Shown: in pieces, positions 5,841-49,639 of the stretch
Position numbering within the stretch: position 1 is the stretch's first letter
Layout of the letters: every line of letters begins with the position of its first letter
DNA from: Anthoceros angustus
Taxonomy: Eukaryota > Plantae > Anthocerotophyta
Assembly (NCBI GenBank): GCA_010909165.1
Contig: VJWM01000044.1
Location: forward strand, 1,302,001-1,366,000
DNA length: 64,000 nt
Reading direction: 5' to 3'
The notes under the pieces: generated by a model
Databases searched by the model: none
Seen by the model: only the letters and a program-made list of their open reading frames with translations
Told to the model about the DNA's origin: nothing
Translations under genes and position numbers: made by a program

Positions 5841-6450
5841 GGCTACGTTTCTTCCCGCGCGCCACCACCACAATTACGTCAACCGAGCCAGCCCGCCTGA
5901 TGCCACTCCCACTCCCAGTCCCGCTCCCTCAAGCCCCGCCCGGCCCCGCTTTGTCCATCCCGAGCTCCTTCCTCCTTCCTTCTTGCACCTAGCTCGAGAT
6001 AATGCGGCAGAAGCAGCCGGAAGGATCAGGGCAGGGCGCGAGGCCGGCTTGGTCGATCCTCCCTCTCTTCCAAGGGATCACGCAACCACGACCGGAGCTT
6101 TCCCGACGTCAGCGTCCGGGCATCTTGCTCACGCCTCGCACAGCACTGGCGACCGTGCTGTCCGTGGCTCCAAGGGGACAGAATAATGGAGACGGGAGGA
6201 GGAGCATAGTCCTTGGAAGGGGCAGGCGCAGGCCGCCATCGCCATCCCCATCATATCCTTCGCACGAGCGACCAGCACCGGCAGCAGGAAATGCAGGCCA
6301 TGCCAGGCCAGGCCAGGCCCAGCGAGCGCTGCGCCAACGGGCCAGCTACTACTTTTACATGATGTACAGCGCCCTGACGTGCCTGCCCGTCCGGGGCCCA
6401 GGCCCCAGAGGCCCAGACCCAGCCCCAGCCCCAGGCCGGGCCCCGGGCCC

Positions 6451-6674: not shown

Positions 6675-9428
6675 TCACGACCCTGCGCGACCGACAACGC
6701 TGGCGCTCACCTCCCGCACCATGGCCAGGACCTGCTCGACTTGCGGGTGCCGCTTCTCCCCGGCCGCGAAGGTGTGCACCCCGCTCCCGACCTCGATCCA
6801 GCTCTGTCCCGGCCGCTTCCACGCGCCTGCCTGCTGCCGCATCGCCTCCACCCGCGCGGCCTGCTCCGGCATCTGCCGCTCCGCGTAGATGCCCGCCATG
6901 AGGAGGTACGCGGCCGCGTGCTGCGGCTCTGTCTTCACGGCTGCTCGGAACGCCATCTCCCCGACCCGGACGTCCCCGTGGTTCCGGCAGGCCACCAGCA
7001 CGGAGAGCCAGAGGGCGAGGTCCGGCTGCACGGCGGTGGGGAGCCCGGCCAGGAGTGCCATCGCCGTGTCCAGCCGGCCGGCGCGGCCGAGGAGGTCGAC
7101 CAGGCTGGTGAAGTGCTGCAAGGACGGGGAGATGCCGTGCTCGCTTCTCATGGCCTCCAGGAACCCTAACCCTGCGTCCACCATGCCGGCATGGCTGCAT
7201 GCCGACAGGAGGTGGAGGAAGGTGACGCCGTTCGGCCTCGCCCCGCTGGCTTCCATCTTGCGGAATTGCTCTCTTGCCTTCATCCCGTCTCCCTGCCTCG
7301 CGTAGCCGGCGATGAGGACGTTCCATGCCGCGATGTCGGGGTCCGGGAAGGCGTCGAACACGCGCTGCGCATCCTCCATGCAGCAGCACTTCCCGTAGGC
7401 GTGGATCAGGGACGTTGCCACGCTCGTGTTCCTGTCCGCCCCGCTCTCTGCCATTTCCCGGTGGAGCTGCCTGCACGTGGCTAGGGCTCCCGCGTTGCCG
7501 CACACTTTGAGCAGGGAGATGAAGGTAGCCTCGTTGCCGCGCACTCTCGCCTCTTGCATTTCAGCGTACACTTGCAAAGCGGCCGCGCCGGCTTCGGCGT
7601 CGTCATGCTGAGCGTAGCCTGCGATCATGCTATTCCACGCCACCACATCCGCCTTCTCCAGACTGTCGAACAGCCTCTTGGCGGCTCGCAAGTCTCCGCA
7701 TTTGGCATACATGTCTACCAAGGCGGTGGCCAGATACACATCCAGCTTGTAGCCGCTCTTCTCTACTTCTTCATGGATGCTGTTTCCCCTTCGCAACGAC
7801 TCGACTTTCAGCACCTGCTGCCCATCCTTCTCTGTGAAGCTCAGACTTTCTTCTTCCATGCTTGCAACGAGGCTGCATGCTTTCAGAGCGCTCACATACG
7901 TCCAGTTGTTCGGGCTCATGCCTTGCTCGAGCATTTCCGAGTACAGTTGTAGAGCAGCCTCTCCCTGCTCATCCTGAACATAGCCACCGATCATGGCAGT
8001 CCATGTCACCACATCCCGTTTCGGCAGTGAATCGAACACGCGCCTTGCCTTCACCACATCCCCACATTTGGCATACATGTGAACCAGGGCATTGGCCACA
8101 AGCACATCGGATTCCAAACCAAGTTTGATGAGGTCCGCGTGGATCTCCTCCCCTGCTTGTAACGACTGGCGTTTGATCGATTTCTCATCAACGAGACTGC
8201 CCTCTTCCGAACCTGCCATGGAGCAACATGCTTTGAGCAAGCTGCCAAAGGTCCAACTATCTGGCCGAACACCCTCCTCCTTCATCCGACTGTACAGTTG
8301 CACAGCCATGGCTCCCGCTTCTTGCTTGGCATATCCTGCCACCAGAGCATTCCATGACACGACGTCTCGCTTTCCCAGTCTGTCGAACACCATTCTTGCA
8401 TTCACCATGTCCCCACATTTAGAATAGGCGTCAACCAAACTGTTCCCAACAAATATGTCGGATTCACAGCCCCTTCTTGCAACCTCGGCGTGAATATCCC
8501 GTACTACTTGCAAAGTCTCTGCTTTCATCTGCTGCCCATCCACCAAACTCTCCTTTTCCGCAGCTGCCAGGCTGCCACAGGCTTTGAGCACGCTGGGAAA
8601 TGTGCGGTGGCTTGGCGTGAGACCACTTTGGAGCATCTGGGAATATAATTGCAAAGCCTTCTCACCTGAACCTTGGTGAGCATACCCTCCGATCATCGCA
8701 TTCCATGACACTACATCCCGTTGTGGCAGTCTGCCAAATATGTGCTGAGCATCCACCATACTTCCACACTTTGCATACATGTCCACCAAACTTGTGCCCA
8801 CGAATAAATCCGTCTCCCAGCTCCCTTGGACAACCTTAGCATGTGCCTGCTTGCCTTCTTCCAGATCTGCTGTGCTCCCACAAGCTTTAAGTACGCTGAC
8901 CAAAGTCAACCTATCAGGCTGTTTGCCTTCCTGTTGCATTCGACTGTACACTCTCAGAGCTTCTTGAGCCTGCCCGTTCATCGTGTACCCCGAGATGATC
9001 GCTGTCCATGAGGTTACTGTACGCTCGGAGAGCTGGTTGAACAGCTCCACTGCATTCACAAGACCCCCGCACTTGACATACATATTGACCATGGAGTTCC
9101 CCAAGTAGCTGTTCGATTTGAATGGACTTCTGCGGATGAGGGCATGCACGTGTCTTGCCTCCCTCAGAAGCCTCATCTTAGTGCAAGCCTGCAACAGATA
9201 GCCGAAAGTCTCCACAGACGCAGCAATGCCCTCCTGCTCCATCATGCTAACGACATTCAAAGCCTCCTTAACTCGTCCCCGCTGACACAGAGCTTTCACA
9301 TCATGGGCAGGGTAAGGGCGGTCCACACATGTTTCTGGGGATCTGAACAAAAGCAGAATTGAAGAGTTACTAGAACACCAATGTGCAACAGCAGATACTG
9401 AACCCTCTCTTTTCCAGTTCGAATTCAT
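6675..9428 (-). CDS. PLS-class pentatricopeptide-repeat protein with E1/E2/E+ extension and no DYW domain (putative organellar RNA-editing factor), intronless, 917 aa
   Basis: Repeating P-L-S motifs (VVSWNAMIGGYA; DVFVGNSLVDMYAKCG), LLSACSHAGMV, VDLLGRAG, PG box AWKRPGQSWIEV and VHTFAAGEKRHPQ. Stop occurs before any HSE/CxxC deaminase motifs. Confidence 0.93.
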   Translation of the reverse strand: MNSNWKREGSVSAVAHWCSSNSSILLLFRSPETCVDRPYPAHDVKALCQRGRVKEALNVVSMMEQEGIAASVETFGYLLQACTKMRLLREARHVHALIRRSPFKSNSYLGNSMVNMYVKCGGLVNAVELFNQLSERTVTSWTAIISGYTMNGQAQEALRVYSRMQQEGKQPDRLTLVSVLKACGSTADLEEGKQAHAKVVQGSWETDLFVGTSLVDMYAKCGSMVDAQHIFGRLPQRDVVSWNAMIGGYAHQGSGEKALQLYSQMLQSGLTPSHRTFPSVLKACGSLAAAEKESLVDGQQMKAETLQVVRDIHAEVARRGCESDIFVGNSLVDAYSKCGDMVNARMVFDRLGKRDVVSWNALVAGYAKQEAGAMAVQLYSRMKEEGVRPDSWTFGSLLKACCSMAGSEEGSLVDEKSIKRQSLQAGEEIHADLIKLGLESDVLVANALVHMYAKCGDVVKARRVFDSLPKRDVVTWTAMIGGYVQDEQGEAALQLYSEMLEQGMSPNNWTYVSALKACSLVASMEEESLSFTEKDGQQVLKVESLRRGNSIHEEVEKSGYKLDVYLATALVDMYAKCGDLRAAKRLFDSLEKADVVAWNSMIAGYAQHDDAEAGAAALQVYAEMQEARVRGNEATFISLLKVCGNAGALATCRQLHREMAESGADRNTSVATSLIHAYGKCCCMEDAQRVFDAFPDPDIAAWNVLIAGYARQGDGMKAREQFRKMEASGARPNGVTFLHLLSACSHAGMVDAGLGFLEAMRSEHGISPSLQHFTSLVDLLGRAGRLDTAMALLAGLPTAVQPDLALWLSVLVACRNHGDVRVGEMAFRAAVKTEPQHAAAYLLMAGIYAERQMPEQAARVEAMRQQAGAWKRPGQSWIEVGSGVHTFAAGEKRHPQVEQVLAMVREVSASVVGRAGS

Positions 9429-10179: not shown

Positions 10180-11345
10180 ACTGCTCAGGGCGTGTTTGAC
10201 GGACTTTTGTTCAAAAGAATGTAGTAACTCGCCCGTGCTTGCAGCGGGAGATTTTCCAGCAAGGAGTGGCTGAGGAAGCCCTTGATCTGCACAAGAGCTA
10301 TGCAGCATGCAGGCACCGTTGTTGCCGATTGTGTGTCATCTGTCTGCCTCCTGCAGTCATTTATGCTGCTTCCCATGGTAGCGTAAATGAATGGGGAGCA
10401 GTGACCTCAAGCTGGTGTGTCTAACTTGGAGCTAAAACATCTTGTAGTTAGACATGCTCGCAGAGCGTGGTAGACTGGAAGAGGCTCTCAGATTATCAGC
10501 TAGTGTCTTGACGGGCTCCTCACGAAAAGATTGTTCTGACGTGGACTGCTCTGGTCAGGATACTCCCAGCAGCGGCCTCATCATATGTAGGGTGTCCAGG
10601 CAGCCCTTCAGCTTAACATTTCGATTCAAGAAAACTTCACTTTCCTCTGCACCGCTATGGCATGTAGTTTGCCTCATGCAGCCAAGTGGAAATGTGGCAG
10701 CTTTGTTTAATTTGCATGTAGGGTGACAGCTTCATGAGGAACCAAGGGGTGCATGCTCATGTGTTTACAGCCGTTTGATCAGCAGGTGTGCAAGTCCGGG
10801 AGCATGGTTGACGGTTGATGGCTGATGCACAGCAGGCGTTTGAGGATTTGGCGTTCTGGGCTGGAATGCACTGACTGCATTTTACAATTAAGCTTGTTTC
10901 ACAGGATGGGAGGATGGCTTGTAGACCCATTCCCCTTGTGTACTGACGTCGACCGTCATGCGGGTCTGGTGAATGAGGCTGGACAACGTACAGTACGTTG
11001 AACACACTAGGGCTTCATTCCTAAAGCAGGGCTCTGCTCATGCATGGTGGTCTCCTGGGTCGCACCGGCACCGGCACCGGCCAGCTTTTGATGAGGCACT
11101 GGATGTGGTAAGGATAAGTGCTACACCTGTTGCCACAGTTGCGCAGACTCTTTAGCTAGTGCTTGTCGAAAGCGGAGGAACACGGAGATGGGCGCATGCT
11201 TTCGATAAGGCACTAACGGCAGACGAAAGAGTTGGTGCAGCACAGGTGCTGTTGTCTAGGATATACACACCACGAGCCTATATGTGGGAGCGGGTAGAGG
11301 AGATGCAGTCGAGCACGAAAGAAATCGGGGCATGGAAGCCGCCAG
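10180..11345 (+). pseudogene. Highly decayed PLS-type PPR gene remnant, divergent to the intact PPR
   Basis: Broken motifs AQGVFDGL...QQGVAEEALDL (about 10185-10300), FDEALDVV (about 11085-11110) and the E/E+-like VGAAQVLLSRIY...WERVEEMQ...GAWKPP (11230-11345), with stops and frameshifts between them. Confidence 0.55.
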
Positions 11346-11417
11346 AACAGGGCTGGAGAACAGACTTGGTCTGGGTGCCTATGTATGGCATCCGGTTCGG
11401 GCTACAACGGATTGTTG

Positions 11418-12110
11418 TCCTCTAGGACCCCATAGCGCCAAAAAAAACCCATGTCCAGCTGCCAACTCCTTCGGCCTCGGAGGACTCAATAACACTTTCC
11501 AAGTTACGTCCTGGCCAGGAGTTGGTCTACAGGTGGTGAGAAACATGAGGGTTTCAACAAGTGATGTTCGTGACACCACCCGTGCAGCGTACACACTACC
11601 CACAGGCCTTGGACAGGTGTCATGTCGCTTCTCTCCTTCAACAACCCCAGTACAGAGAAGTCAGTGATCGTCAACCTGCCGACTCGAACACTTCTGTACG
11701 ACAAACAAAACGCCTTGCGATTCTACATCCGTGGAATTGTTTACAAGCAAAGGCTTCAAGGAGATGGTGCTCTCATTGCTCTGCGTCCTGAGCGAATCCT
11801 CCGCAAATTTTGTCACAACTTCACCACGCCGAGTTTTCCTAAACGACGAGAAGCATGTGAATCATCCAGCTTGAATAGTACGCAGAGTCTTGAAGATATG
11901 AAAATTCTTTGCCGGTGCAGATGGATGACATCAGTCCAGTTGGCGTCGTCAGCATATTCCGTTGCACATTTGATCAGCCCGAGCTGGTGGATCTGTGGCC
12001 GTTTGCCAACACAGCGAACCTACTCACACCACTCAAAAACAATATGTTCGGTCTTTAAGCGTCTTTGACTAACCATGACCACCTAACTATGGAATACCGA
12101 TCTGGTCACG
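11418..12110. repeat. Repeat X copy 1 (about 0.7 kb; direct homolog at 50940-51665)
   Basis: Long collinear matches such as gttacgtcctggccagga...ctacaggtggtgagaaac...gaagtcagtgatcgtcaacctgccgactcga...ctttgactaac...ctatggaataccg in both copies. No conserved open frame was recognised. Confidence 0.8.
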
Positions 12111-12327
12111 CGTCATCCACATTTGTTTAGGGTTGTGGACAGAAAAAAATAATCCTGCCACATTCGACGGAACTATTTCGGTATGTCACGCATGACCACA
12201 TCGGTCGGGTTTACGACCCCTGGTGTCCCGATGTTGTCAACCTACCCCATGATGCACGAAAAGATTTCACGATACACAAACTTTTTTTCTCTCGGGTTTA
12301 GGGTTGCGTGTAGGTCATTTGCATTGC

Positions 12328-12496
12328 TGTCGTGCTAAACAGTGTCAGCCTGATCAGTTGGCTAGCTATTGGCAGGATTATGTGAAAAAGAAAGATCTGG
12401 GCACTAGCTTTCCAACTAGCTTATTGGTCATGAACGTGACCGTAAGACAATTTGAAAACCAGGCAAACAGAGTGGTGGTCCTTGCAAGTCCTGATT
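12328..12496 (-). repeat. Terminal repeat block B2 (3' end of the element)
   Basis: tgtcgtgctaaa...gtccttgcaagtcctgatt is near-identical to 13681-13840. Confidence 0.9.
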
Positions 12497-13678
12497 AGCA
12501 TCGCACAAAAGCATCACCGTCACCACACAGTCTCAGTCTCACAATTCTCTCAGGTGATGTCCACCAGCCCAACGCCCAGCGCTGCCGTGCGCTGGTGCTA
12601 TTCTAATGCCCGCGACGGGACACCGCAGCACTCATGAGCTCTCCTGGACGAATCCTGAGACTCGTGAGCAAGACCCCCGTCCTGCAATCCCAGCGACTGT
12701 GTTTGCGAGTTGTAGTAAGTCCTCCACCTAGCCCCGGCGTGTCACACTCAGATCGTCAGTTACACACACACCGCGATGTGGCACATCGGTGTTGCACTGA
12801 TTTACGGCGTTGGATTTACAAGCGATTCCTTGGTCACCACCTCGGCGGAAGCCTAGGTTCAACGAGAGAACTTCTAACAAGCGTATCGAGCCTAGAAGCC
12901 GACTTATACGCCACGCTTGCTCGGCCGTTGCCTGCAGCCTCCCTCCTCCGTCTCGCCATGTCGCACGCTCGTAACCTCCCAGCCATTTTGCACAATGATG
13001 CTTCTCGCCCCTGAGCCCTAAACGAGTCGCACGTTCCCTACCTAGCCAATCCTGATCTACCTAATTACAGTCGGCCCCCCCTAATTGGGAATTCTATAAA
13101 TGGGATTCCTCTCTAAATGCGACCTCCCATCCTACTCCCTTTAGTTTACAATGTAATAAATGGGACTTTTCCCTAAATGATAATTGGGACCTTTGAAACA
13201 TACATTCATGTTAGTTTCACCTCCCTAAATGGGATTTCTAATTTTTACTAAAAAATTAAAAAGAAAAAAAAGAATCCATTATTTGAGAGCACAATAGACT
13301 TTTAGGTGTGATTGAAGACTCTTAAGCTAAGCTTTTTCCTTTATGATAGATAGAGGTTTTTTGATGTCGCTTAGAGAGTGCTAGCTTTCAAACAACTATA
13401 TAAAGAACTGGTAAAAGTTATTTTTAGTGAAACCTATCAATCAAAATTTAAATTTTCTTTTTTGGGTATTTTTGATTTTTAAAATTTATAATATTTTTAT
13501 TATTTTTAAATAGGAAAATACAATCGGGACACTTCCCTTAATGGGACCTCTAAAGGCACTCCGAACCAGTCCCAATTAGGGGGGGTGGACTGTATATGAT
13601 TAGCCTAATTACATATAATTAGCCTAATTACATATGTTTGATTAATCAGATATCCTAATTAATCAACATGGCCTGACA
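12497..13678 (-). repeat. Repeat block A2 (LTR-like; contains a MITE)
   Basis: agcatcgcacaaaagc...catggcctgaca matches 23120-23753 once 13068-13594 is removed. Confidence 0.9.
13068..13592. mobile_element. Non-autonomous Tc1/mariner(pogo)-type MITE with TA TSD, inserted in A2
   Basis: TIRs CAGTC(GG/CA)CCCCCCCTAATTGGGA, TA at 13066-67 and 13593-94, AT-rich interior. The empty site cctaatTAtatgattag is present in A1 near 23661-23677. Confidence 0.9.
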
Positions 13679-13680
13679 AC

Positions 13681-13840
13681 TGTCGTGCTAAATAGTGTCA
13701 CCGATCGGGTTGGCTGGCGTGATTATGTGAAAAGAAAGATCTGGGCACTAGCTTTCCAACTAGCTTATTGGTCATGAACGTGACCGTAAGACAATTTGAA
13801 AACCAGGCAAACAGAGTGGTGGTCCTTGCAAGTCCTGATT
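13681..13840 (-). repeat. Internal repeat block B1, preceded in element orientation by a G8 tract (13841-13848, PPT-like)
   Basis: Direct copy of 12328-12496. It is separated from A2 by the 2 nt at 13679-13680 and followed on + by cccccccc. Confidence 0.88.
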
Positions 13841-13924
13841 CCCCCCCCAGTGTGGTGATACCTGGCACCAAAACTGCAGACAGGCCACACAGAGAAATGG
13901 GTCGGACCCATTGAGTTTACCTGA

Positions 13925-14107
13925 TCAGTTATCCCTGTGGTCCCTAGCTCGACAGAGAGGGCAATACCACAGGTTCTCTGGCACCTCGGTCAGCGGTGGC
14001 TGAAGGCAAAATAGATGGAAGCCTCCATGGCAGCCGTCACACAGCAGGATGAGCTCTGGATCGTCAATCCTCCTGCACTCGATAGTGTCGGTAATCAGGG
14101 GGATCAA
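13925..14107 (-). CDS. PHD finger at the integrase C-terminus (frameshifted)
   Basis: ECRRIDDPELILLCDGCHGGFHLFCLQPPLTEVPENLWYCPLC fits the C4HC3 pattern. The first Cys is lost at the frameshift junction with the integrase ORF. Confidence 0.88.
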   Translation of the reverse strand: MIPLITDTIECRRIDDPELILLCDGCHGGFHLFCLQPPLTEVPENLWYCPLCRARDHRDN

Positions 14108-15494
14108 TTTCTTTGTGACTGGGGTCCAAGTTGGGCAGATGGCAAGGGGCGCAGTTCTTCATGTGGTCTGTGGTGACCCTCCCATCTGACCCTTCCAGCA
14201 ACAGCACTCCATTCCTACGCACCTCTCGCAACCGTAACACATGTCTGCTAGTGCTAGGCTCCAAGGTATCCTGCGTTTGCCGCTGTAGGTAGACGTAGTC
14301 CCCTGGCTGGAATTTCCTGACCTTGGGATGGAAGCTCCCACTTCTGGTGTGAGCATACCTGAGCGCATCACGATGCTGGGCTATCCTGAGATTGGCCATG
14401 GCCATTGGCATCACCTGTCTGAATAAGGCTGCACGTTCTCCAATAGCCTTGGCCCATGCCGCTGGATCATCCAGGCTCAGCACCTCCTGCATCTGTCGGG
14501 CAATGGCCACAGGTGGTACTGGCTCTCTTCCAAACAGAAGGAAGTAAGGTGAGAAGTTGGCCAGTGATGCGTGCCTGCTCATCCTGTAGCCCATAGCGAT
14601 GTATGGCAAAGCCAAGTCCCAATCTGTCTTGGGCTTGGTGAGACACAGCTTCCTCAATGCACGTTTGATGGTTTGCACCATTCTCTCGGCCAATCCATCT
14701 GCCTGAGGGTGATCACGACTGGTGCGTCGGTGATCAATGAGCGCAGCATCTAGTAAGTCCTGGAACTCACCTCTGAATTCAGCCCCTTGGCCTGTCAAAC
14801 ACTCGGCGCTGCCCCCAAACCGGCTAAGCACATTGTGTAAGAATGCTTGAGCTGTGCTGCGTGATGCCTTGTCTGGCAGCGCCATCAGCTCCACCCACTT
14901 CGAAAAGTGTTCAATCATGACCATGATATAAACATTTCCACGTGGTGTTCGTGGGAATTCCCCAGCCAAGTCACAGGACCACCTGAAGAATAGTCCCATG
15001 ATGGGCAGTGGCTGCAACTCTGAGTGAGGGTTGCTGAAAGAAGCCTTGACTCTGTCACATTGAGCACACTTGACTACTTCCTCACGCACCTGTGTGAACA
15101 TGCCATGCGAGTGGAAGTGGGGAAGAAGCAAGCTGTAGGTGCGCTTCACACCAAAGTGACCTAAGTCTTCATGTACTCTGTGAATCAGTCCTGCACGGTC
15201 CTGTGGTGGTGGCACCAGTCGTTCAGTCCCGTTGGCCAGTCTTCTCAGCAAATAGCCATCCCTCCACTCATAGCGAGCTGCTCTCTGCTGCACTCTCTCT
15301 TGCTGATGTGCATCCAGGCTGGCATCCATATGTCTAGTCTTCACGTACTCTAGTGTGACTTCATCACTCCACACATCCTTGTGCGGTTGGAAACGACTGT
15401 TAGTGCAACCCTGTGCCATACACAGCATAGTCACCAAAGCCGCAGCATTAGGTGTCTCTTCCATGTCACCGTCTGGCGTCGGTGTTGTCCTCAC
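14064..15494 (-). CDS. Retroviral-type (rve) DDE integrase with HHCC zinc-binding domain
   Basis: HEDLGHFG...CAQCDR, WSCDLAG, EHFSKWVE, CLTGQGAEF (second catalytic Asp appears as Gly), PQADGLAERMVQ, LLFGREP. Confidence 0.92.
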   Translation of the reverse strand: MRTTPTPDGDMEETPNAAALVTMLCMAQGCTNSRFQPHKDVWSDEVTLEYVKTRHMDASLDAHQQERVQQRAARYEWRDGYLLRRLANGTERLVPPPQDRAGLIHRVHEDLGHFGVKRTYSLLLPHFHSHGMFTQVREEVVKCAQCDRVKASFSNPHSELQPLPIMGLFFRWSCDLAGEFPRTPRGNVYIMVMIEHFSKWVELMALPDKASRSTAQAFLHNVLSRFGGSAECLTGQGAEFRGEFQDLLDAALIDHRRTSRDHPQADGLAERMVQTIKRALRKLCLTKPKTDWDLALPYIAMGYRMSRHASLANFSPYFLLFGREPVPPVAIARQMQEVLSLDDPAAWAKAIGERAALFRQVMPMAMANLRIAQHRDALRYAHTRSGSFHPKVRKFQPGDYVYLQRQTQDTLEPSTSRHVLRLREVRRNGVLLLEGSDGRVTTDHMKNCAPCHLPNLDPSHKEIDPPDYRHYRVQED

Positions 15495-15964
15495 TTACGG
15501 TGGCGTGATGTTATGCACATTAGTTGCTTGGTTCCAAGCCTATGAACCACCTCAAACTCATAGTCTTGGAGTATCATGGCCCACCTTGCAAGCTTTCCGC
15601 TAAGCTTGGTGTTGGACATCAGCCACTTTGAGGGCTGATGATCTGTCACCAACGTGAACTTTCGCCCATACAGGTAAGGTCGAAAATGGCAGATTGCCCA
15701 CACAGCTGCAAGCAACTCCCCTTCATAGCTGGAGTAGTTTGCTTCTGCTCTGTTGTTGCTTCTTGAGGCATAGGCAATGACCCTCTCCTGACCTTCAGCG
15801 TCCACTTGTGCTAGCACCGCTCCCAGCCCCAAAGTGCTCCAGTCTGTATGGAGGACAAATGGCTTGGCAAAGTCAGGCCTGGCCATAATTGCATCCGACC
15901 GCTTGTTTTTCAAACTTTCAAATGCAACAATTGCGTCAATCCCAAAATTTGTCTCCTTGCGCAA
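15491..15964 (-). CDS. Ty3/Gypsy RNase H
   Basis: PDFAKPFVLHTDWS..GLGAVLAQ...VIAYASR...NYSSYEGELLAAVWAI.HFRPYLYG..FTLVTDHQP. Confidence 0.93.
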   Translation of the reverse strand: MRKETNFGIDAIVAFESLKNKRSDAIMARPDFAKPFVLHTDWSTLGLGAVLAQVDAEGQERVIAYASRSNNRAEANYSSYEGELLAAVWAICHFRPYLYGRKFTLVTDHQPSKWLMSNTKLSGKLARWAMILQDYEFEVVHRLGTKQLMCITSRHRK

Positions 15965-17115
15965 TTATCATTCAAAGGCTTAGCAATGCTGCTAAAGGCC
16001 TGTACATAGATCCTGTAGTAGTTGCACAGCCCTAGGAACGCCCTAAGAGCAGACACGTTGGTTGGAGCCTGAATCTGCTGGATTGCCTGAACCTTGGCAG
16101 CATGTGGTGTTATACCATCTGGTAAGATCCTGTGACCTAGGTAGGCCACTGTGTCCATGGCGAATTTGCACTTGGCTGGGTGGCACGTTAGCTGAGCCTT
16201 TTGCAGCCTTCGAAACAGGTCCTCCAGGTGGATTAGATGAGTGTCAAAGTCCACGCTGTGGACCAGCTCATCATCTATGTAGCACAAAAGGTGAGGGGCC
16301 CCCACCAATACCTTGTCCATGACCCTTTGGAAAGTTACTGGTGCATTCTTGAACCCAAAAGGCATGACCAGCCACTCCCACAGCTGGTGAGCTCCATGAA
16401 ATGTTGTCTTGGGTATGTCCTCCTCTGCCACTGGCACCTGGTTGAAACCCTGCCGCAGATCCAAAGTGGAAAAGAATTTGGACTGTCCAATGTTGTCGAA
16501 CAACTCCTCTGGCGTAGGCATAGGATACCTATCAAGGGCTGTTGCTGCATTGATAGGACGGTAGTCCCCACACATTCGTTTTTCAGTCAAAAAGCCTTGG
16601 CTGTCCTTCTTGGGTGGAAGGACGGTGGCGGCTGCATAATCAGAACTAGAGGGCCTAATCAACCCAGCCCGATACAACTCTTGGCAGCGTGCTTCCACAA
16701 TCTCCCATTCAGATTGGCTCAATCTGTACCTGCGCCTATAGATCGGCTCAGTGGTGTTGAGGTTGATTCTGAACGTCATGACATTGCACCTTTTCAAATC
16801 CTTCATGCTGAAGGCAAAATAGTCCGAGTACTGCGAAAGCAAGGCTTGGATCCGCTGCTTCTGCCTTGAATCCAGCTGAGGACCCATAATCCAATCAAAA
16901 GCTTCCGCAGTGGGTGGAGATTTGACAGCTGATGACAGTCCTAGTCCTGAATCCGATTCAAGAAAACAAGTTTGGAGACATGCTCCCCTGCGTCGGTGAT
17001 GGGGTAGTAGCGAAATCCCGGGAATGGCAAATGAACGGCATCCGGGTGACAGGATAGAGTCTGTGTGTGAGAGCCTTGATCCCAAGGTCTGGTAAACACC
17101 TGGAAAGCCAAGCAA
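15910..17115 (-). CDS. Ty3/Gypsy reverse transcriptase
   Basis: RMCGDYRPIN, YPMP, FSTLDLRQGFNQV, KTTF, VMPFGFKNAPVTFQRVMD, CYIDD, KCKF..VAYLGH. Confidence 0.95.
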   Translation of the reverse strand: MLGFPGVYQTLGSRLSHTDSILSPGCRSFAIPGISLLPHHRRRGACLQTCFLESDSGLGLSSAVKSPPTAEAFDWIMGPQLDSRQKQRIQALLSQYSDYFAFSMKDLKRCNVMTFRINLNTTEPIYRRRYRLSQSEWEIVEARCQELYRAGLIRPSSSDYAAATVLPPKKDSQGFLTEKRMCGDYRPINAATALDRYPMPTPEELFDNIGQSKFFSTLDLRQGFNQVPVAEEDIPKTTFHGAHQLWEWLVMPFGFKNAPVTFQRVMDKVLVGAPHLLCYIDDELVHSVDFDTHLIHLEDLFRRLQKAQLTCHPAKCKFAMDTVAYLGHRILPDGITPHAAKVQAIQQIQAPTNVSALRAFLGLCNYYRIYVQAFSSIAKPLNDNCARRQILGLTQLLHLKV

Positions 17116-18092
17116 AGACTAAGCAGCCAAGTCAAGGCACTCATATCCATAGCACGGCCAAGTGCTGCAAACCTCTGTGCCCTGGAAGCCTGGGGTGCCG
17201 CTGTACTGTGGGTATGAAAACCCATTATCCGTTCTCTCTCCTCCACTGTAGGTTCCTCCCACACCTTGGTATCCTCATTAAAGAGCATACCAGGGCCGTT
17301 ATTCCTATAAGCATAGGAGCCGGGATAGCTGACCACCGTGGGCAAGGTTTTCCTTGGCTGACCTGGTGTGTTGGTAGGGAACCACGGAGCTCTCTCCTTG
17401 GCTGTGACAGGTTTGGGAGTGTGATTGTCATCCAGCACGTCCTGTAAGAGTCGAGTGGGGTCCCGTTGCTGCTCCTGTAAAGCCAAGTTTAAGACAGGCA
17501 ATGGGACCAGGTTTGTCCAGTAATTCCTAAGTCTGTGAGCGTAGCTGCCCACCTGAGCAGCATCCATGGTAAATGGCGTACCAATGGCCTGCTGAATAAC
17601 ACCCATGTCTTGGCGTAACTGTGGACGAGCATCCAGTTGAGCTGGTGTATTTTCCAGCAAGTAAGCCATTGTGGGGTGCTGATCCTGGAGCCATCGAAGT
17701 ACTTGCACCAGATCCCTAAATAAGCCTGAACGGCTATCGTGCAGCCCTGCTCCTTTCCCAGCTTGGGACAGACCCTGGAACTCCCATCCTGCAATTAGCA
17801 AATCCACATTCCCAATAGCCTGGACGTGTGCTTGCTGGATATACCGAATGTTTTGTGGAAGAGCATTACACATGTTCTTGCTGGCCTGCCGAGGAAATTG
17901 CTGAGGGAACTGCTGCTGTAGCGATTGCACTCGATGGATTGCAATGTGCCTAACAGTTGGGCAAGCATCACAGTAGATGTATCTAGAAACCCGCATCAAA
18001 GACCGCCTCCGGACTGGCACATGTCGAATGCCCACCAAGGTGATCCCTTGTGGTGTAGGTCTGTAATAATGTAATGTTGAATAGGAGAACAA
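16941..18092 (-). CDS. C5 cytosine DNA methyltransferase domain (DNMT3-like) embedded in pol; this copy degenerate
   Basis: Motif IV region DLLIAGWEFQGLSQAG (GxxCQ with C>F), RSGLF, motif VI YLLENT, motif VIII DAAQVGSYAHRLRNYWTN, motif IX/X EERERIMGF...LGRAMD. The motif I region (GITLV..., frame-scrambled) precedes RYIYCD. Confidence 0.88.
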   Translation of the reverse strand: MFSYSTLHYYRPTPQGITLVGIRHVPVRRRSLMRVSRYIYCDACPTVRHIAIHRVQSLQQQFPQQFPRQASKNMCNALPQNIRYIQQAHVQAIGNVDLLIAGWEFQGLSQAGKGAGLHDSRSGLFRDLVQVLRWLQDQHPTMAYLLENTPAQLDARPQLRQDMGVIQQAIGTPFTMDAAQVGSYAHRLRNYWTNLVPLPVLNLALQEQQRDPTRLLQDVLDDNHTPKPVTAKERAPWFPTNTPGQPRKTLPTVVSYPGSYAYRNNGPGMLFNEDTKVWEEPTVEERERIMGFHTHSTAAPQASRAQRFAALGRAMDMSALTWLLSLCLAFQVFTRPWDQGSHTQTLSCHPDAVHLPFPGFRYYPITDAGEHVSKLVFLNRIQD

Positions 18093-18119
18093 TGCGCCTC
18101 CCCTATTAGATCTGAAAGC

Positions 18120-18905
18120 TCATTGCTTGTACGGCATGACACGAGCAATCGTCTCTCGAGTCAGAGACGCCCTTGTCGGGCCGTGAGCCCTGCATTGTCC
18201 GGATACTAGGGCTTGGGAGTGCAGCTGTGCTCCCAGCGCATCTTCCTCAAGATCAGGGAAGAGAACGTCCTCGTCCTCTCCACACTCAGTCAGCCATACT
18301 TGAGCGCGATAGTCTGGTAGTAATCGGGGCATTGTCCCATCCTCCCATGGCTGGATCTGCGTCATGCAGGCTTGTCTTACCACCAGCGTAGCTTTAGCTG
18401 CTTGTGTGGCGCCATGCAAATCTAGGGGCAGGTAAGCAATGCGCGTTCCCCCTTGCTGCCAATCTGGCCTGTAAGAGGCCTGTTCTGTCCAATTGTCAAT
18501 GGAAACTCCTGGAGGGAACAAAAATTCCTGTCCCAACAAGATGTCATAATTGGTGGCCCCTGTGACCAGGCAGCGCACCGTCAAGCTCACCTCATCCGCT
18601 GTGTTGGGCTTCAAAGTGATCTTGACTGGTTGGGTGGTTTCCCCTTTTACAGGTTCAACCGCCCCTGAGGCTGTGCGAATGTTCCAGGGAGACGGCTGCA
18701 GAGCACTCCCTTCCAGTCGCAGCCTAGCAGCCAGAACCTTCCCTATGATGACTGGTTGTGCTCCCGTGTCCAATAACACACCTCTAGGCGCGAATCCATT
18801 CACCAGCACATGGCTGCCGCGATTGTCCACCAGCACATTGCCAATGGTGGCCTTGCGCCGATTTGTGGGCTGTATGATTGGCAAACCCTGGCTCTCACAA
18901 GCCAA
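18120..18905 (-). CDS. Retroviral-type aspartic protease
   Basis: GVLLDTGAQPVIIG catalytic motif and YDILLGQEFL. Confidence 0.88.
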   Translation of the reverse strand: MACESQGLPIIQPTNRRKATIGNVLVDNRGSHVLVNGFAPRGVLLDTGAQPVIIGKVLAARLRLEGSALQPSPWNIRTASGAVEPVKGETTQPVKITLKPNTADEVSLTVRCLVTGATNYDILLGQEFLFPPGVSIDNWTEQASYRPDWQQGGTRIAYLPLDLHGATQAAKATLVVRQACMTQIQPWEDGTMPRLLPDYRAQVWLTECGEDEDVLFPDLEEDALGAQLHSQALVSGQCRAHGPTRASLTRETIARVMPYKQ

Positions 18906-19258
18906 GGTAGCTTTTGCACCTCTTGCACGAAAAAGGATCCAACCACTCGATCATGATCAGCAAAGAACACTCGGCTTGTGAAGGCTGCAACATGATGCCT
19001 ACAGCAGCTTCTTCAATTCCCACATCTTGCAGGCTGAGTAAGGGTGCCTTGTATACCCTCTTCAACAGCTCCTTGTGTGTCAACACCATGGTCAGTAATC
19101 GGATAGCTTGATCAGCCTTCGGTGTTTCTGGCCAGTGACGCTGGCTGGAAACTTGGTCAATCCCTTGTTCCACCCGATCTCCTTCAGGTAGGTGATCGCC
19201 TCATCGTAGGCCGACCACGTGGAAGTCACTGGAACGACTCGTATTGCCCTAGCACTGG

Positions 19259-20801
19259 TCATGTGGTAATAAGAACTATTTCCAAAGCATGGCCCAACCA
19301 TGTTTGTGGTAGCTGCTCACCAGTCCTGGGCCAGTCTATCTGCTCTAGGCCTTTGCCATGAGATGGCCCAAACTCTGACTGCTCCGTGTGTGTTGCATAG
19401 GCTTCCATGATGGGGCCATAATCCTCATCAAGGTCAGTTGATGTTTTGGTAGCCACAAGTTCCACAACACTGGCTGACTTAGCAACATTCAAGCTGGCTG
19501 CCAACGTGCTAACCTGAGTGGTCAGTGCCGCCATGGCTGTCTCTAGGGCAGTCAGTTTGTCGGCTTGAGCAGCAGTCTTCTGCTGAGCCTTGTCACGCTT
19601 GACCTGGCTCTTGGCAGCTGTGGCTCCCTCCTATGGCCGCATTCCTGTGAAGCCTGCCGTCTTTTCCACGGGCCGCCAGTTAGGATACTTGGGAATGAGA
19701 CTACTCACGTGATCGCACGCAAAGGAGTGCAGCGTAAGAGTCAAGACTCACCTTGCATGCATGCAGAAGATGTTCAAGATCGCCACACCAAGCACAAGTG
19801 TGGTAATGTAGTCACTCCAGCCTTGGCTAGCTTAGTCTCCCTGCCCTTGCTGGCAACACCCTGAGTTGTTGCCGAACTACTCTTTCCTGAAAACATCTGC
19901 TGGTAATGGTGAAAGGCTTTGGTATGTTGAGAAGCATACGCTGAAAAAGCCAGTTCCTTCTTCTCCGCTTCCTGATAGACCTGATCCAGTGTGTAGTTGT
20001 CCCCATACTTGTCAACCAAGGTGGTAAACAACTGATAGTGAAACAGTGGGTCAGTCTCTAAGGCAGCCAGAAACTTTTGAGCCGCCTCTTGGTCGGTCAG
20101 CATGCCCGTACCATCTCTTAGCTTCTGTAATCGCCGAAAGACCATCTGGACGGTCTCACCTTTCTTGCGCGCAAAGGCTGCAAGCTCCGCAATCTTCTCC
20201 GGAGTCTTGGTTGGAAAGGCCCTGTCCAGAATCGCGAAGAAGTCCTCCACAGGGTTGTCATGCTTGGGTACGTCCAACTTGTCCGGGATACCAGCTGTGG
20301 CAGTAGCCATCTCCTGTTGAGTCATGTTCACTACCGTAGGTGGTGGGACTGATGTTGCAATGATGCCACCGCATCCACCTTGGTGAGTGGCCACCGCGCA
20401 AAGAACTCGCCTTATGCTACAGTACGCGAAGGTGAGTTAAGGTTCTCTACCACCGCCAACATCTCTGGTGCATGAATCTCGAACAAGTCCAAAGCTTCAT
20501 CAGCTAGATACCCAGGTAGCTGTTCAAACATGTACCTATGGGTGTAAGCAGTTCCATGCTTAAACTTAACGCGGCTGGTTAAGAACCCATAAAACAACTT
20601 GAAATCTCTAAGAGGTTGCGTCCCTGGCCTGCCAGAAAACTTCTCAGACTTGTGACCAGATGCTCCAGACCCCTCCATGGTGTCAGACTCCTCGGACTCC
20701 TTCTCCTCCGAGCTGGTTGCTCCACTTACGCGGCGAGTTTCTCTATCATTGAAGAGGAGCTTTTGGATATGCTTTGAGTGTCTATTAATACAATCGTACA
20801 A
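19259..20801 (-). pseudogene. Gag (fragmented) with CCHC zinc knuckle
   Basis: Capsid-like ORFs 20412-20801 and 19774-20394 (FARKKGETVQMVFRRLQKL...KFLAAL). Manual translation of 19796-19755 gives CAWCGDLEHLLHAC. A coiled-coil segment lies at 19259-19600. Confidence 0.75.
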
Positions 20802-21973
20802 GAGTAGAGGATGATATTACATGTGTGTGAAGATCATGTTACAAATGATGCTGATAGAGATTAAAGAGCAGTTATTACAGAGTAAAGTCCAATTGGTGGA
20901 GATTGGGAAGCAATCAAAAGTTCAACTCTTGGAGCTTGAGAGGCAGCTAGCTAAACTTACTCCAACTAGTCAAAAGTCTAAAATTTAAACAATTAAATTT
21001 TAGACTTTTGACTTCAACAATTAAATTTTACATTGCCTCTCAGAGATAACGAGGAACATATTAAATAAATAAAAATTAAGATCAGAATTAGATTTCAAAT
21101 TATCAAAATAATAATAATGTGGTAATCTTTAAAAGGGGAATATGAAATTAAATACCTCTCTATACATTGGAGAGAACTAGGCCTTGCATTCTAATTTGTT
21201 TGCTGGGCTACCCGGTACGATGCTGGCAATGTGAAATCCAGCCTTGAAAGGAAGAAGAGGGTTTAGGTCCCCTCTTAACCCAACAAACTTAACCTTTGCC
21301 GCAAGAAAGAATCTTGCTTCGCCTGATCAAAAGTTTAGTTGTTAGAGGCAGTCCAAAGTTTAGCTGTTGGAGGCTACGAGGCACTCAAATCTGTTGAAGG
21401 CTGAGAGGTAGTCAAAAGTTGTTGAAGGCTGAGAGGTAGTCAAAAGTTCAACTGCTGAAATTTGCAGAGCAGATGAAAATAATAGAGCTTGGGAAGCAAC
21501 AAATGGAGTATTCTTCACAAAGGAATTAATTTAATCAAACATCAAGTATTTATAATTCTTTTAATTCTTTTAATCATTTATTATTGTTTAAATATTGATT
21601 TTAATACTAATATGTTGTAAGTTTTGCAGTTTAAGGCTAATCTCAAAGCTGGTTTTTGCACTATTTTCAAACAACAAGATTGGTAATTAGAAGAAGGTTA
21701 AGAAAAGTAAGAGTATGAGAGTGCACAACAATCTGTGCCTGCTGACTGACCCTGACTTCCTGCTAGAACACTAGCAGGGCTATGTTATCGACAGCCAAGT
21801 GTCCACCAGCCTGAAGCTCTGCTCACTCAGGATCTAGGCCAAACCAGCACTTACAGCTCAGAAGTAGATGTACCACTCTCCACCAGACGCTCAGCAAGGT
21901 GAGTATCTTGTCCTTCCCTTAGCTCACCAAAACTATAGCACGATGAGCCCACACCCTGATCCTAACAAAGAAG

Positions 21974-22575
21974 GGCGGGTGTCTCTCTGTGCACATAGCC
22001 AGAACCACATAAGCTTATGGACAAAAACCCGCAGCACACCAAACCGATGGCCACAAAGTTCAGGACACAGTTGTTAGAAGTAGCATCGCACAAAAGCATC
22101 ACCGTCACCACACAGTCTCAGTCTCACAATTCTCTCAGGTGATGTCCACTCAGCCTGCCAGGGCCGTGCGCTGGTGCTATTCTAATGCCCGCGACGGGAC
22201 ACCGCGGCACTCGTGAGCTCTCTGGGCGAATCCACGAGACTCGTGAGCAAGACCCCGTCCGCAATCCCGGGTGTTTGCGAGTTGTAGTAAGTCCTCCACC
22301 TAGCCCGGCGTGTCACTCGGATGCGTCGATTACACACACACACGATGTAGCATCGTGTTTGCACTCTGATTTCTGAGCAGTGGATTTACAAGCGATTCCT
22401 TGGTCAGCCACCTCGACGGAAAGCCTAGGTTCAACGAGAGAACTTCTAACAACTGTGTGACTGAGCCTAGAAGCCCGATACTTATTTGCCACGCTTGCTC
22501 CTGGCCGTTGCCCGCAGTCTCCCTCCTCTCCGTCGGCGCCATGCCCACGCTCGTAACCTCCCAGCCATTTTGCAC
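21974..22575 (-). repeat. Partial extra copy of block A plus adjacent leader (duplicate of 23020-23595)
   Basis: ggcgggtgtctctct...tgttagaagtagcatcgc...ccagccattttgcac occurs twice, separated by an AT-rich spacer at 22576-23019. Confidence 0.85.
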
Positions 22576-23119
22576 TACCGGTTTAAAGGGCATAATGGAG
22601 AAAGTCCAACTCAAGAATGTTGACGATCACTTACAAGTTGGGTAAAAATAGCTTTGCAACATCACATCAAGGTATAATGTCTGATAATGTTTTATTATAC
22701 CTGCAGGTGTAGTTAGTTTCTCATTATCTATTATATATAAATGCATGCATGATTGAAATACTTTGAAAAATTAGATGCTAAGTGTAGATCATGATAGAGC
22801 AGCTCAAAAAAAATATTTGATATATAATTAGTTCAAAAACATTTGATATATTATATTATAATATAATTATATATAATATAGCTTTAAAATATTTGATGTA
22901 TAATATTATAAGTGGATTATCAACCACAAGTGGATTATATACTTGTCAATCAAATCTATCTAAACATACATGTAATTGAAGCCGCCGCCATCGCTGAAAG
23001 CGGCTACATGGCCCGAGGAGGCGGGTGTCTCTCTGCACATAGCCCAACCACATAAGCTTATGGACAAAACCCGACACCAAACCGATGGCCACAAAGTTCA
23101 GACCACGGTTGTTAGAAGT

Positions 23120-23753
23120 AGCATCGCACAAAAGCATCACCGTCACCACACGTCTCACAATTCTCTCGGTGATGTCCACCAGTAGCAGCCTTGGCCGTGC
23201 TGTGGTGCTAATTCTAATACGACGGGACACCGCGGCCTCGTGAGCTCTCTGGGCGAATCCGAGACTCGTGAGCAAGACCCCGTCCCCGCAATCCCCGGCC
23301 CATGTTTGCGAGTTGTAGTAAGTCCTCCACCTAGCCCGGCGTGTCACACTCGGTCGTCGATTACACACACACACCGATGTAGCATCGTGTTTGCACTCGA
23401 TTTACAGCGGTGGATTTACAAGCGATTCCTTGGTCGCCCACCTCGGCCCGGAAGCCTAGGTTCAAGCGAGAGAACTTCTAACAACGTGGTGAGCCTAGAA
23501 GCCCACGCTTATTTGCTCTGGCCGTTGCCCGCAGTCTCCCTCCTCTCCGTCGGCGCCATGCCGCCCACGCTCGTAACCTCCCAGCCATTTTGCACAATGA
23601 TGCTTCTCGCCCCTGAGCCCTAAACGAGTCGCACGTTCCCTACCTAGCCAATCCTGATCTACCTAATTATATGATTAGCCTAATTACATATAATTAGCCT
23701 AATTACATATGTTTGATTAATCAGATATCCTAATTAATCAACATGGCCTGACA
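23120..23753 (-). repeat. Terminal repeat block A1 (5' end of the element)
   Basis: Matches A2 and ends ...catggcctgaca, followed by the TSD. Confidence 0.9.
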
Positions 23754-24304
23754 TTGCCGTACCATTACGGTACGCAATATTCCATCTCTAGTCACGCGGC
23801 ATCCACATTTCTTTAGGGTTGTCAGCGGTTGCATTAGCAACCGCTTGTAACGCATCCGCTTGCCTCACATGTTCCGTCTCTTAAGAGACGCAGGGTCACT
23901 CTGAGCGGGCATAGATGTAGCATGAGGAACAGGGTGTTGGATGTCTGGGCCAGCTGCCGTGATAGTAGCCGTGGATGCCAAATTCAAATGACTATCATCG
24001 AACGGTAGCTTCAAATTTATCGACTTTTGATGAAAAAGTCCATCTTGCACATGACAACCAAGGAACACCCTAAGGGTCCAGGTGAAAAGGGGCAATTAAG
24101 CTTTTTCCAAAGCCTGACAGGGTAAACATTCTCGTACTGGCAGCGTAACTGACTGACGGACCTTTCCCAAGGGACCTTCCTTGTTTCCATTTCTCCAATG
24201 AAAATGACAAACTCATGCCATATAGTGTCTGCATTCTCACCATTGTATGAGCTCCACATCTTCTTGTGCATCTAGCGCCACACAATTTGTAGATTGCAAT
24301 GCCC

Positions 24305-24654
24305 CTGGCTTGAATTCGGGAGTTGGTTTTGTTGCCTTGCTCCGACTTCATAGTCAGTGGCCTGATACCTGTAGGACCCACCTGGGTCTACTACATAGTA
24401 GCTTTTGTACAGCTGCTGGTGTGCTAGATCCCCTCCTTCCATTCTCTAAGGCACATCAACCTCCTTGGCTCGGTCCTCACCTTGACCTCTGTTGGAGCTG
24501 CCTTTGGCGGTTGCATTCTGTAGTAGTCATTGGGCAATCTTTGAGCCACTTGATGGAAGCTAGCTTACATTGAGTTAGTTCTATGACCCCTCACTGCCCT
24601 CAGGACACTCTTCTAAAGCACCAGAAAAGAACTACAACATCACCACAGACGGTA
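24305..24654 (+). pseudogene. GAT transporter pseudogene fragment 1 (introns retained, internal deletion)
   Basis: Collinear with 53515-54110, except about 230 bp (53630-53858) is missing. Interrupted by the Copia LTR at 24655. Confidence 0.85.
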
Positions 24655-24840
24655 TGTAATTGTTCATGGAGCGTGAGCGATGGATGCCTATGGGCATTAC
24701 ATTATCGTTAGATTACATCTGTGTCAGGACTTGCACTTATGTGCATGATCAGGTGTTGAGCGAAATGCTGTGGCGTTCAGTAACCGTCTCCTAACCTACT
24801 GAACCGTGCCCTAATGGCCTTAATATTACCATTCTTAATA
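24655..24840 (-). repeat. Copia 3' LTR (186 bp, 5'-TATT...TACA-3'); PPT agtgggag adjacent at 24841-24848
   Basis: Direct repeat of 46753-46951 plus 47303-47313. Confidence 0.9.
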
Positions 24841-24874
24841 CTCCCACTTAGTGTTTAGGCCTTGGGCTTAGATC

Positions 24875-26155
24875 TTAGGTCGTGATATACTTTGTTAACT
24901 CGGATAGTCTCATTAGCCCCATGTTGGCTGAATGTTCTTGATGCTTCACGCTGCTGAGTGCCTTAGTTAGCACATCTGCTGTCATCTGCTCCGTCGGACA
25001 GTATAGGACCATGAATTTGCCGTTGCTGATGACTTGTCTTATAAAATGAAATTGTACCTCCACGTGTTTAGTTCGAGCGTGGAATTTGGAGTTGTAAGTT
25101 AGCGAAATAGCACCCTGATTGTCGCAGTACAAGGGTCTTGGTATTCGCTGGGTTTCCCCTAACTCCGTGAGCTCATAAAGCTGCCAAAGTCCATCCTTAC
25201 ATGCGTGGGTTAAGGAGCAGTACTCGGCCTTTGTTGAGCTGAGTGCAACTGTTTGCTGTCGTTTGTTGCTCCAACTTGTTGCTGTCCCGCCGAGTAGGTA
25301 GACATAGCTCCTTATGCTCTTTCTGTTGTCCACGTTGCCGGCCCAGTCAGCGTCACTGAACCCTTCGAGCTATAGAGGCTGGTCCTGCTGGATTTGAGAA
25401 TGATATAGGAGTCCCATATCCGAGGTTGCTCTCAAATATCTGAAGATCCTCTTCACTACTTTCCAACGAGCTTGAGTAGGAGCAGATAAATACTTAGATA
25501 GAGCTCCCACTGAAATTGAAAGGTTCGGTCTAGTGCAGTCCATTAGATACATTAGACTTCCGAGGGCGGAAGAATAGGCCGTAGCTCGTCGCTGCTATGA
25601 GCATTGGCTTCATGTTGTTGATCATCCTCCTCAGGTAGCTTTAGGTTAGTTTCCATAGGTATAGAAGTAGGCTTATTTATCCTGTATATATTTAGACTGA
25701 TGAATAAATAGACTTCTGGCCTTTCTATCTCTAAGAACTTGAATCCCTAAGCGAAAGGAAAGTTCTCGACATGTGGTCATCGAGAATCGCTCAGCAAGCA
25801 TCATCCGAGTGTTTTCTAGGACATACTTTGAGTTAGACATTAATACGATGTCGTCGACGTAGACTCCTACAACAATAAAGTGACCATTAAGTCTATTGAT
25901 ATAGATATAGTCTGAACTTAGTCTAGTGAAGCCTAGGTCCTGAAGGGTGACATCTAATTTTTCATACCATTCAAGAGCACTTTGTTTAAGTCCGTAAAGT
26001 GCTTTTAGTAATTCACAAGCATTAAACTGGTTGTCCTTAACTTGTATACCTTCGGGTATTTCCATGTAGATCTTGTGTTTGAGGTCGCCGTATAGGAAAG
26101 CTGTTTTGATATCCAGCTTTATCAACTCATAGTCATGGTGAGCAGCTAAAGCCAT
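24875..26155 (-). pseudogene. Copia RT and RNase H (frameshifted)
   Basis: KLDIKTAFLYGDL, LLKALYGLKQS, GVYVDDIV; MYLMDCTRPNL; SWSNKRQQTVALSSTKAEY, LYCDNQGAI, RTKHVEVQFHFIR. Confidence 0.92.
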
Positions 26156-49481: not shown

Positions 49482-49639
49482 CGCCACAAAGCAAAGAACG
49501 CGCGGGTTAGGGCAGGAGCACAGAGGCGTGTACTCCCCAGGCGGCCCCGCCCTGCTGCAGGATCCGTACCCGGTTCAAGGGCATCGCTTCCAAGGACAGC
49601 CCGAAACGGGCCGCCGATAAGCCATTCTTCCCTTAAGAT

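Follow-up and report, generated by a model that had tools for sequence, protein, structure and literature searches.

In this study, we analyzed a 64,000-nt stretch of the Anthoceros angustus (Anthocerotophyta) genome (GenBank assembly GCA_010909165.1, contig VJWM01000044.1, positions 1,302,001 to 1,366,000 of the forward strand; this whole stretch is referred to as the window, and coordinates are counted from its first nucleotide). Positions 12,328 to 23,753 of the window harbor a retrotransposon that possesses a DDE integrase but does not carry the two identical long terminal repeats (LTRs) expected of such an element; instead, its direct repeats, A and B, are split in the order A-coding region-B-A-B. 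The element is a member of the Ty3/Gypsy family equipped with a DNMT3-like methyltransferase and a PHD finger, and it is either KnitGypsy-Dnmt3, an element described from Klebsormidium nitens, or close kin of it. The analysis of related loci confirmed that the A...B-A-B layout is a trait of this family and not a rearrangement of the window copy. We consider it probable that the layout reflects a permuted Gypsy element whose reverse-transcription repeat is B-NN-A, whose integrase ends lie inside U3, and whose cDNA termini become joined. The window copy adds a new member, hosted by a land plant, to this known kind of element. Because the core layout observation has already been published for K. 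nitens, the value of the present analysis lies in the mechanism.

Repeat Layout of the Anthoceros Element

The element is read on the minus strand and in its own orientation consists of A1, a coding region, a G8 tract, B1, 2 nt, A2, and B2. This map had been drawn with its coordinates in a first-pass annotation of the window, and it was borne out when we compared positions 11000-26000 with themselves by blastn. In this comparison, B2 (12327-12496) matched B1 (13680-13840) with 91.8% identity (E = 4e-61), while A2 matched A1 in two blocks: 12496-13067 against 23119-23669 with 85.5% identity (E = 8e-163), and 13593-13678 against 23668-23753 with 100% identity. These matches are far beyond what chance could produce. 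The 5' terminal copy, A1 (23120-23753), starts with TGTCAGG, the left integrase end, and contains a TATA-like box and a predicted transcript start at 23485. The terminal copy at the other side, B2 (12328-12496), shares its first 111 nt with B1 and ends with CACGACA, the right integrase end. B1 (13681-13840) likewise ends with CACGACA, and it would represent the first part of U3 in terms of reverse transcription; a polypurine tract of eight G residues (13841-13848) directly adjoins its start. The 2-nt spacer gt (13679-13680) separates the end of B1 (..ACA) from the start of A2 (TGT..), which creates an internal site of abutted ends. A2 (12497-13678) also starts with TGTCAGG and possesses a TATA box (TATAAGT) about 30 nt ahead of the putative self-primer stretch described below.

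The whole unit is bounded by TG..CA termini (TGTCAGG..CACGACA) and flanked on both sides by GCAA in element orientation (23757-23754 on the 5' side and 12327-12324 on the 3' side), equivalent to TTGC on the plus strand; both the termini and the duplication had been proposed before and are evident by direct reading. Elements of the Ty3/Gypsy type are bordered by two identical terminal repeats, while here the 5' end consists of A only and the 3' end of B-NN-A-B. Hence, the repeat unit is circularly permuted with respect to the insertion ends. A blastn search within the window for a paralogue of the unoccupied insertion site yielded no match.

Coding Capacity and Family Assignment

Inspection of the minus strand with Pfam revealed the domain order protease, reverse transcriptase, RNase H, and integrase with its H2C2 zinc domain and rve core, an order that is characteristic of Ty3/Gypsy elements. 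The aspartic protease (18120-18905; gag-asp_proteas, 6.5e-9) is preceded by two pieces of gag-like open reading frames (ORFs) at 19774-20801 that were recognized because tblastn aligned them with gag regions of relatives. Reverse transcriptase and RNase H (15491-17115; RVT_1, 1.2e-29; RT_RNaseH, 4e-39) are encoded in two overlapping frames, and the integrase (rve, 1.6e-11; Integrase_H2C2, 4e-11) is followed by the PHD finger (7e-12) within 13925-15494, with one frame break between them. No match to a tyrosine recombinase (Phage_integrase) was obtained by Pfam among 20 ORFs of both strands, in agreement with the earlier reading of an HHCC-rve integrase unaccompanied by a tyrosine recombinase.

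The DNMT3-like cytosine methyltransferase domain (16941-18092) is located in pol between the protease and the reverse transcriptase. It scored 24.1 bits against Pfam DNA_methylase (3e-5; cut-off 22 bits) and is 35% identical to the corresponding domain of the K. nitens element (tblastn, 1.7e-49). This position of the domain, combined with the A-coding-B-A-B repeats, is what distinguishes KnitGypsy-Dnmt3-like elements. In their protein sequences, the closest matches of the window integrase were found in Calypogeia fissa (67% identity), and the K. nitens copies were 48-57% identical. The motif containing the catalytic cysteine of the methyltransferase reads EFQ in the window copy, ECQ in a moss-type relative, and PCQ in the K. 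nitens element; the ENxP motif is retained.

The Layout Is Shared by Related Elements

The relatives comprised three loci from K. nitens (L002, L004, and L087), loci of the C. fissa assembly GCA_965154635.1 (L086, L088, and L090), and eighty moss-type loci (L006-L085) from the metagenome contigs Ga0116226-31, Ga0209611, and Ga0209208, the last of these sets being collected with an integrase alignment. The fetched loci were then surveyed with profile searches for A and B. Eight complete and independent A..B-A-B elements were present on the moss-type contigs, and about 27 further moss-type loci displayed the B-A-B 3' end with the 5' side cut off by the end of the contig. The survey also revealed ten complete A..B elements and one solo A-B. 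Not a single element among these relatives carried B ahead of its 5' A, A-B-A was seen at 0 of about 19 complete 5' ends, and no relative was bordered on its two sides by paired repeats of the A-B or B-A type.

All three K. nitens loci share the layout of the window element, with a G-run abutting B, the sequence B..CGACA-GC-TGTCA..A, and A abutting B2; a PHD finger following the integrase was detected in the K. nitens element by tblastn. Locus L086 of Calypogeia represents a full element with A copies of 676 nt (96.9% identical), B copies of 125 nt (100% identical), and the duplication AGTG. B-A-B was likewise seen in L088 and L090, the Calypogeia locus L001 was too nested for its layout to be read, and repeats were not found in Calypogeia L089. 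For L003, blastn detected no repeats, and the later profile search revealed A..B.

Target-site duplications were scored in the 20 elements of which both ends could be read. Perfect 4-bp duplications flanked 12 of these: six of ten A..B-A-B elements, the window copy included, five of nine A..B elements, and the solo A-B. Four further elements matched at three of the four positions. The chance of finding at least 11 perfect 4-bp matches in 19 elements is about 2e-22. These data show that A1-coding-B1-NN-A2-B2 is inserted as one unit by a DDE integrase acting on the TG.. that opens A and the ..CA that closes B. With 4-bp duplications in the window copy and 11 relatives, and with no tyrosine recombinase ORF, the element does not fit the definition of the DIRS order.

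Copies of the A..B type are scattered across the integrase tree. When their age was compared with that of A..B-A-B copies by the density of stop codons, the difference was not significant (p = 0.11), and by this measure deletion and direct integration are indistinguishable as their origin.

Several additional observations were made on the surveyed loci. The Gypsy family bearing the DNMT domain and the PHD finger is abundant in a liverwort (C. fissa) and in moss-type contigs, beyond Klebsormidium. At 141-2299, the Calypogeia locus L086 additionally includes the 3' end of an element from another subfamily; it has its own B-A-B, composed of a B of about 100 nt and an A of about 346 nt, and precedes the full element by 300 bp. 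Modified 3' ends were noted as well (L054:11491-13229; L044/L048; L078): a B1 that is interrupted and precedes B-A-B, an A2 of which only the first 76 nt remain, and an insertion of 855 bp that separates B1 from A2.

Polypurine Tract, Primer-Binding Site, and Promoter

Nearly all relatives possess a G-rich run (G4 to G10) that adjoins the start of B. In all relatives examined, B terminates with ..CGACA or a very similar sequence, after which come 2 nt and the A start TGTCA. At the other boundary of the coding region, the 11-17 nt immediately behind A form the reverse complement of a segment located inside A. This relationship is present in three lineages whose sequences at these sites are unrelated. 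In the window, the predicted primer-binding site ACTTCTAACAAC (23108-23119), adjoining the end of A1, is the reverse complement of 23485-23474 in A1 and pairs with GTTGTTAGAAGT at A[269]. The corresponding pairs are TCTAGAAAAACT with AGTTTTTCTAGA at A[164] in the moss-type (Sphagnum-type) elements and CACTTCAGAACT with AGTTCTGAAGTG at A[379] in Calypogeia.

Compensatory changes were found in these pairs. Compared with L015, locus L003 possesses TTTAGAAAAACT paired with AGTTTTTCTAAA; in the window, A1 with X1 (the stretch following A1) and A3 with X3 (an extra partial A with its own following stretch, see below) each pair over 17 positions while the flanking letters differ. A TATA box is present about 30 nt upstream of the internal self-primer stretch in all three lineages. 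We recognized no primer-binding site of the tRNA type after A. The site that follows A is predicted to be of the self-priming type, as it is in Tf1.

Regeneration of the Repeats and the A2/B2 Joint

In a tree of the moss-type elements, A1 clusters with A2 of its own element and B1 with B2, and clades that separate A1 from A2 do not occur. Separate inheritance of A1 and A2, as envisioned for DIRS-like elements, is rejected by this tree. In the Calypogeia element L086, the 21 differences between A1 and A2 are evenly spread and mostly of the C-to-T type. Because A1 and A2 cluster within elements and the differences in L086 are spread evenly, the A and B repeats behave like LTRs that are identical at insertion and regenerated in each cycle.

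The two junctions within B1-NN-A2-B2 behave differently. The spacer between B1 and A2 is a constant 2 nt across the relatives, while the A2/B2 joint varies even among close relatives: it is precise in nine loci, two nucleotides short in six loci, and elsewhere contains one to three extra nucleotides or small deletions. Variability of this kind would be expected if B2 were not copied from RNA and the cDNA termini were joined afresh in each cycle.

A Proposed Route of Replication and Integration

The reading that we consider probable as the best overall explanation can be spelled out as follows. Transcription would start at the self-primer stretch in A1 (23485 in the window), and the RNA would prime its own reverse transcription, as is the case for Tf1. 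Because the polypurine tract adjoins B and the primer-binding site adjoins the end of A, the repeat unit of reverse transcription would be B-NN-A, with a U3 that comprises B, NN, and the initial portion of A and an R-U5 that comprises the rest of A. Since the repeat would be B-NN-A, the linear cDNA would run B-A...B-A and would possess termini that are not themselves integrase sites; the sites of the integrase (..CA NN TG..) would lie abutted within each repeat, inside U3. The cDNA termini, the A end and the B start, would have to be joined, whether by circularization, by end-joining in the host, or by template jumping, and the integrase would then cut the abutted site of the repeat that adjoins the primer-binding site, resulting in an insertion of the form A...B-A-B. 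Copies consisting of A..B only lack the 3' U3-R and would represent dead ends; they may have been produced either by integration through both internal sites or by a later deletion between B1 and B2.

The first-pass annotation had equated the layout with a two-repeat (BA-BA) circle opened at an internal B/A site. The polypurine tract at B, the primer-binding site at the end of A, and the variable A2/B2 joint are consistent with this proposal, and a circle opened by the integrase is a plausible route. Several points weigh against it and against the permuted-element reading more generally. A two-repeat circle contains two identical abutted sites, and the product of opening the other one, A-B-A...B, was seen at none of the about 19 complete 5' ends; unbiased opening of such a circle is therefore unlikely. 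The 100% identical blocks of A1 and A2 in the window stand beside blocks of 80-85% identity, a pattern not expected if one template had served to regenerate both repeats. The local arrangement of the window copy is known from the assembly alone. The relatives examined are all old (3-25 stops per 1000 amino acids), and later deletions may distort the census. Finally, all of the replication steps have been deduced from sequence. Candidates for the bias toward one isomer are a preference for one site (e.g., since the left repeat becomes double-stranded first), joining that takes place after integration, or a jump of the reverse transcriptase from the A end to the B start.

The last two of these candidates lead to a variant in which the permuted anatomy operates without a free circle: the integrase would act on the abutted site in the left repeat of the linear cDNA and insert both halves, with host end-joining closing the chromosome break that lies between the A end and the B start, or the reverse transcriptase would jump from the A end to the B start. 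The variants of the A2/B2 joint (precise, loss of 2 nt of microhomology, small additions) resemble the products of end-joining or template jumps, and the missing isomer would fit a left repeat that is completed and bound first. Nevertheless, this variant is itself a reconstruction and, on paper, shares the symmetry of the circle as long as timing and strandedness are alike for both repeats; we regard it as rather unlikely, if worth serious attention. The strongest form of the joined-termini idea states that an intermediate with joined termini (a two-repeat circle or its equivalent) is obligate, that the DDE integrase cuts a ..CA-NN-TG.. site templated in U3, and that host end-joining is essential. 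We put this forward tentatively, as a possibility that may well claim too much. If true, LTR-type retroelements would possess a third route of integration, which would be conserved between charophyte algae and land plants and overlooked by annotation based on repeat pairs.

Two explanations that dispense with this anatomy were weighed as well. Replication in the manner of DIRS and PAT elements would copy A1..B2 without regenerating the repeats, complete the termini from the internal B-A joint, and depend on a recombinase provided in trans. The layout does equal that of PAT/Ngaro elements, and in the window complete identity of A1 with A2 is confined to their first 193 nt, as if this were the sole part to be recopied. 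Yet the 4-bp duplications together with TG..CA ends are a hallmark of insertion by a DDE integrase, such an enzyme is encoded while a tyrosine recombinase was not found in the 20 ORFs, and A1 and A2 cluster by element rather than by position. Moreover, this scheme predicts that the terminal part of B is identical, whereas in the window it is the 5' part. We judge it to be very improbable. Still more so is the idea that a canonical Gypsy element bearing ordinary A-B LTRs was rearranged once, altered by a nested insertion, or mis-assembled. The window copy has certainly undergone secondary changes (the insertion of a miniature inverted-repeat transposable element [MITE] in A2, an extra partial A, mosaic identity), and its arrangement depends on the assembly, but the same layout, junction logic, and target duplications recur in K. 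nitens, C. fissa, and dozens of moss-type contigs, none of the relatives has paired repeats (A-B or B-A) at its two ends, and the polypurine tract at B and the primer-binding site at A are found family-wide.

Peculiarities and Surroundings of the Window Copy

In the window, A2 comprises 1182 nt and A1 634 nt; the excess is due solely to a 525-bp insertion (13068-13592) in A2 that is not present in A1. This insertion is AT-rich and MITE-like, with inverted ends of about 24 bp (CAGTC..CCCCCCCTAATTGGGA) and a TA duplication, as revealed by sequence reading and alignment of A1 with A2. Ahead of gag resides an extra partial A with its following stretch (21974-22575), 86.8% identical to 23020-23595 by blastn. 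Alignment divides it into A3 (22081-22575), which corresponds to A[161-635], and X3 (21974-22080), a second copy of the post-A stretch; A3/X3 possesses its own 17-nt self-complementary primer-binding stretch at 22081-22065. An AT-rich spacer of 444 bp (22576-23019) separates A3 from X1, and a blastn search found no match to it elsewhere in the window.

The copies of each repeat show mosaic identity. It is 100% over A[1-193] and B[1-111] and falls to about 80-85% in the remainder, where we counted 34 transitions, 28 transversions, and 42 indel columns. The pol ORFs of the window copy contain about five frame breaks and no in-frame stops, while each of 69 relatives carries 3-25 stops per 1000 amino acids. 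Because of this difference the window copy, although frame-broken, is fairly young, and age therefore does not explain the blocks of A and B that diverge by 15-20%. The variable part of A exists in three versions that are mutually equidistant, two of which each come with a matched primer pair. Candidate origins of the mosaic are a recombinant cDNA, ectopic gene conversion, or a chimeric assembly that switched between members of a multi-copy family.

Both flanks of the element contain similar short stretches (12101-12136 and 23787-23822), and positions 12001-12112 resemble a stretch 28 kb away (51519-51665); the element seems to be set in older repeated DNA. Elsewhere in the window, we noted three ORFs of the leucine-rich repeat receptor-kinase type (238-2568, 3543-5873, and 47784-49487) and one long intronless ORF (6675-9428) for a PLS-class pentatricopeptide repeat protein with an E motif. 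These genes indicate a land-plant host, and a search with the pentatricopeptide repeat protein returned matches of 32-45% identity in many land plants.

Comparison With Known Systems

A split-repeat layout in a Gypsy element with a DDE integrase, as the first-pass annotation had seen it, is real but not the first of its kind: the legend to Figure 4c of the study on KnitGypsy-Dnmt3 of K. nitens already assigns to that element the repeat structure of DIRS elements (de Mendoza 2018, PMC5890265). That paper and its supplement give no target duplications, primer sites, or mechanism, and the paper describes the DNMT-bearing Gypsy element as an acquisition in the K. nitens lineage (PMC5890265). We searched the literature for follow-up studies on KnitGypsy and for a proposed mechanism, with no result beyond the 2018 paper, and a large survey of plant LTR elements makes no mention of a PHD finger or a methyltransferase (PMC6317226). 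The window element resembles KnitGypsy-Dnmt3 in its set of Gypsy domains, in the DNMT3-like domain between protease and reverse transcriptase, in the DIRS-like repeats, and in the PHD finger after the integrase; it differs in that its host is a land plant, in the 48-57% identity of the integrase, and in the lengths and sequences of A and B. What is added here is the polypurine tract at B, the predicted self-priming site at the end of A, the proposed placement of the integrase ends inside U3, the variable A2/B2 joint, and the lack of the alternative isomer among the surveyed 5' ends.

The KnitGypsy-Dnmt3-like family ranges across Klebsormidium, liverworts, moss-type contigs, and the land plant of the window, and the rule that a DDE integrase goes with paired LTRs and split repeats with a tyrosine recombinase fails for it. 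Annotation tools that seek two identical terminal repeats will miss such elements or place their boundaries wrongly. If the anatomy described above is correct, the cDNA should begin with B and finish with A, transcription should start at the self-primer, and the A/B joint should be made afresh.

With DIRS-type elements such as PAT, Ngaro, and TOC1, the last of which is classed as a non-autonomous DIRS element (PMC9940879), the family shares the A1-coding-B1-A2-B2 order of split direct repeats. Those elements possess a tyrosine recombinase and generate no target duplication, whereas the family of the window element has a DDE integrase, TG..CA ends, 4-bp duplications, and repeats that behave as regenerated LTRs. 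Self-priming is known for Tf1/Sushi elements and has been predicted for Tcn1 elements of mosses and clubmosses (PMC6317226). The likeness to these is drawn from the arrangement of the primer site, i.e., a primer-binding site that directly follows the repeat and would pair with 11-17 nt at the predicted 5' end of the transcript; they differ in carrying ordinary paired LTRs.

The abutment of two ends as ..CA-NN-TG.. recalls the junctions of retroviral two-LTR circles and of IS3/IS30 circles. DDE enzymes of the retroviral and IS3/IS30 types cut such abutted ends, and a DDE enzyme could cleave both strands of the site described here. In retroviruses the junction is a by-product of the ligation of cDNA ends; in the family described here, by contrast, it would be templated inside U3, and the ligated ends would correspond to the A2/B2 joint.

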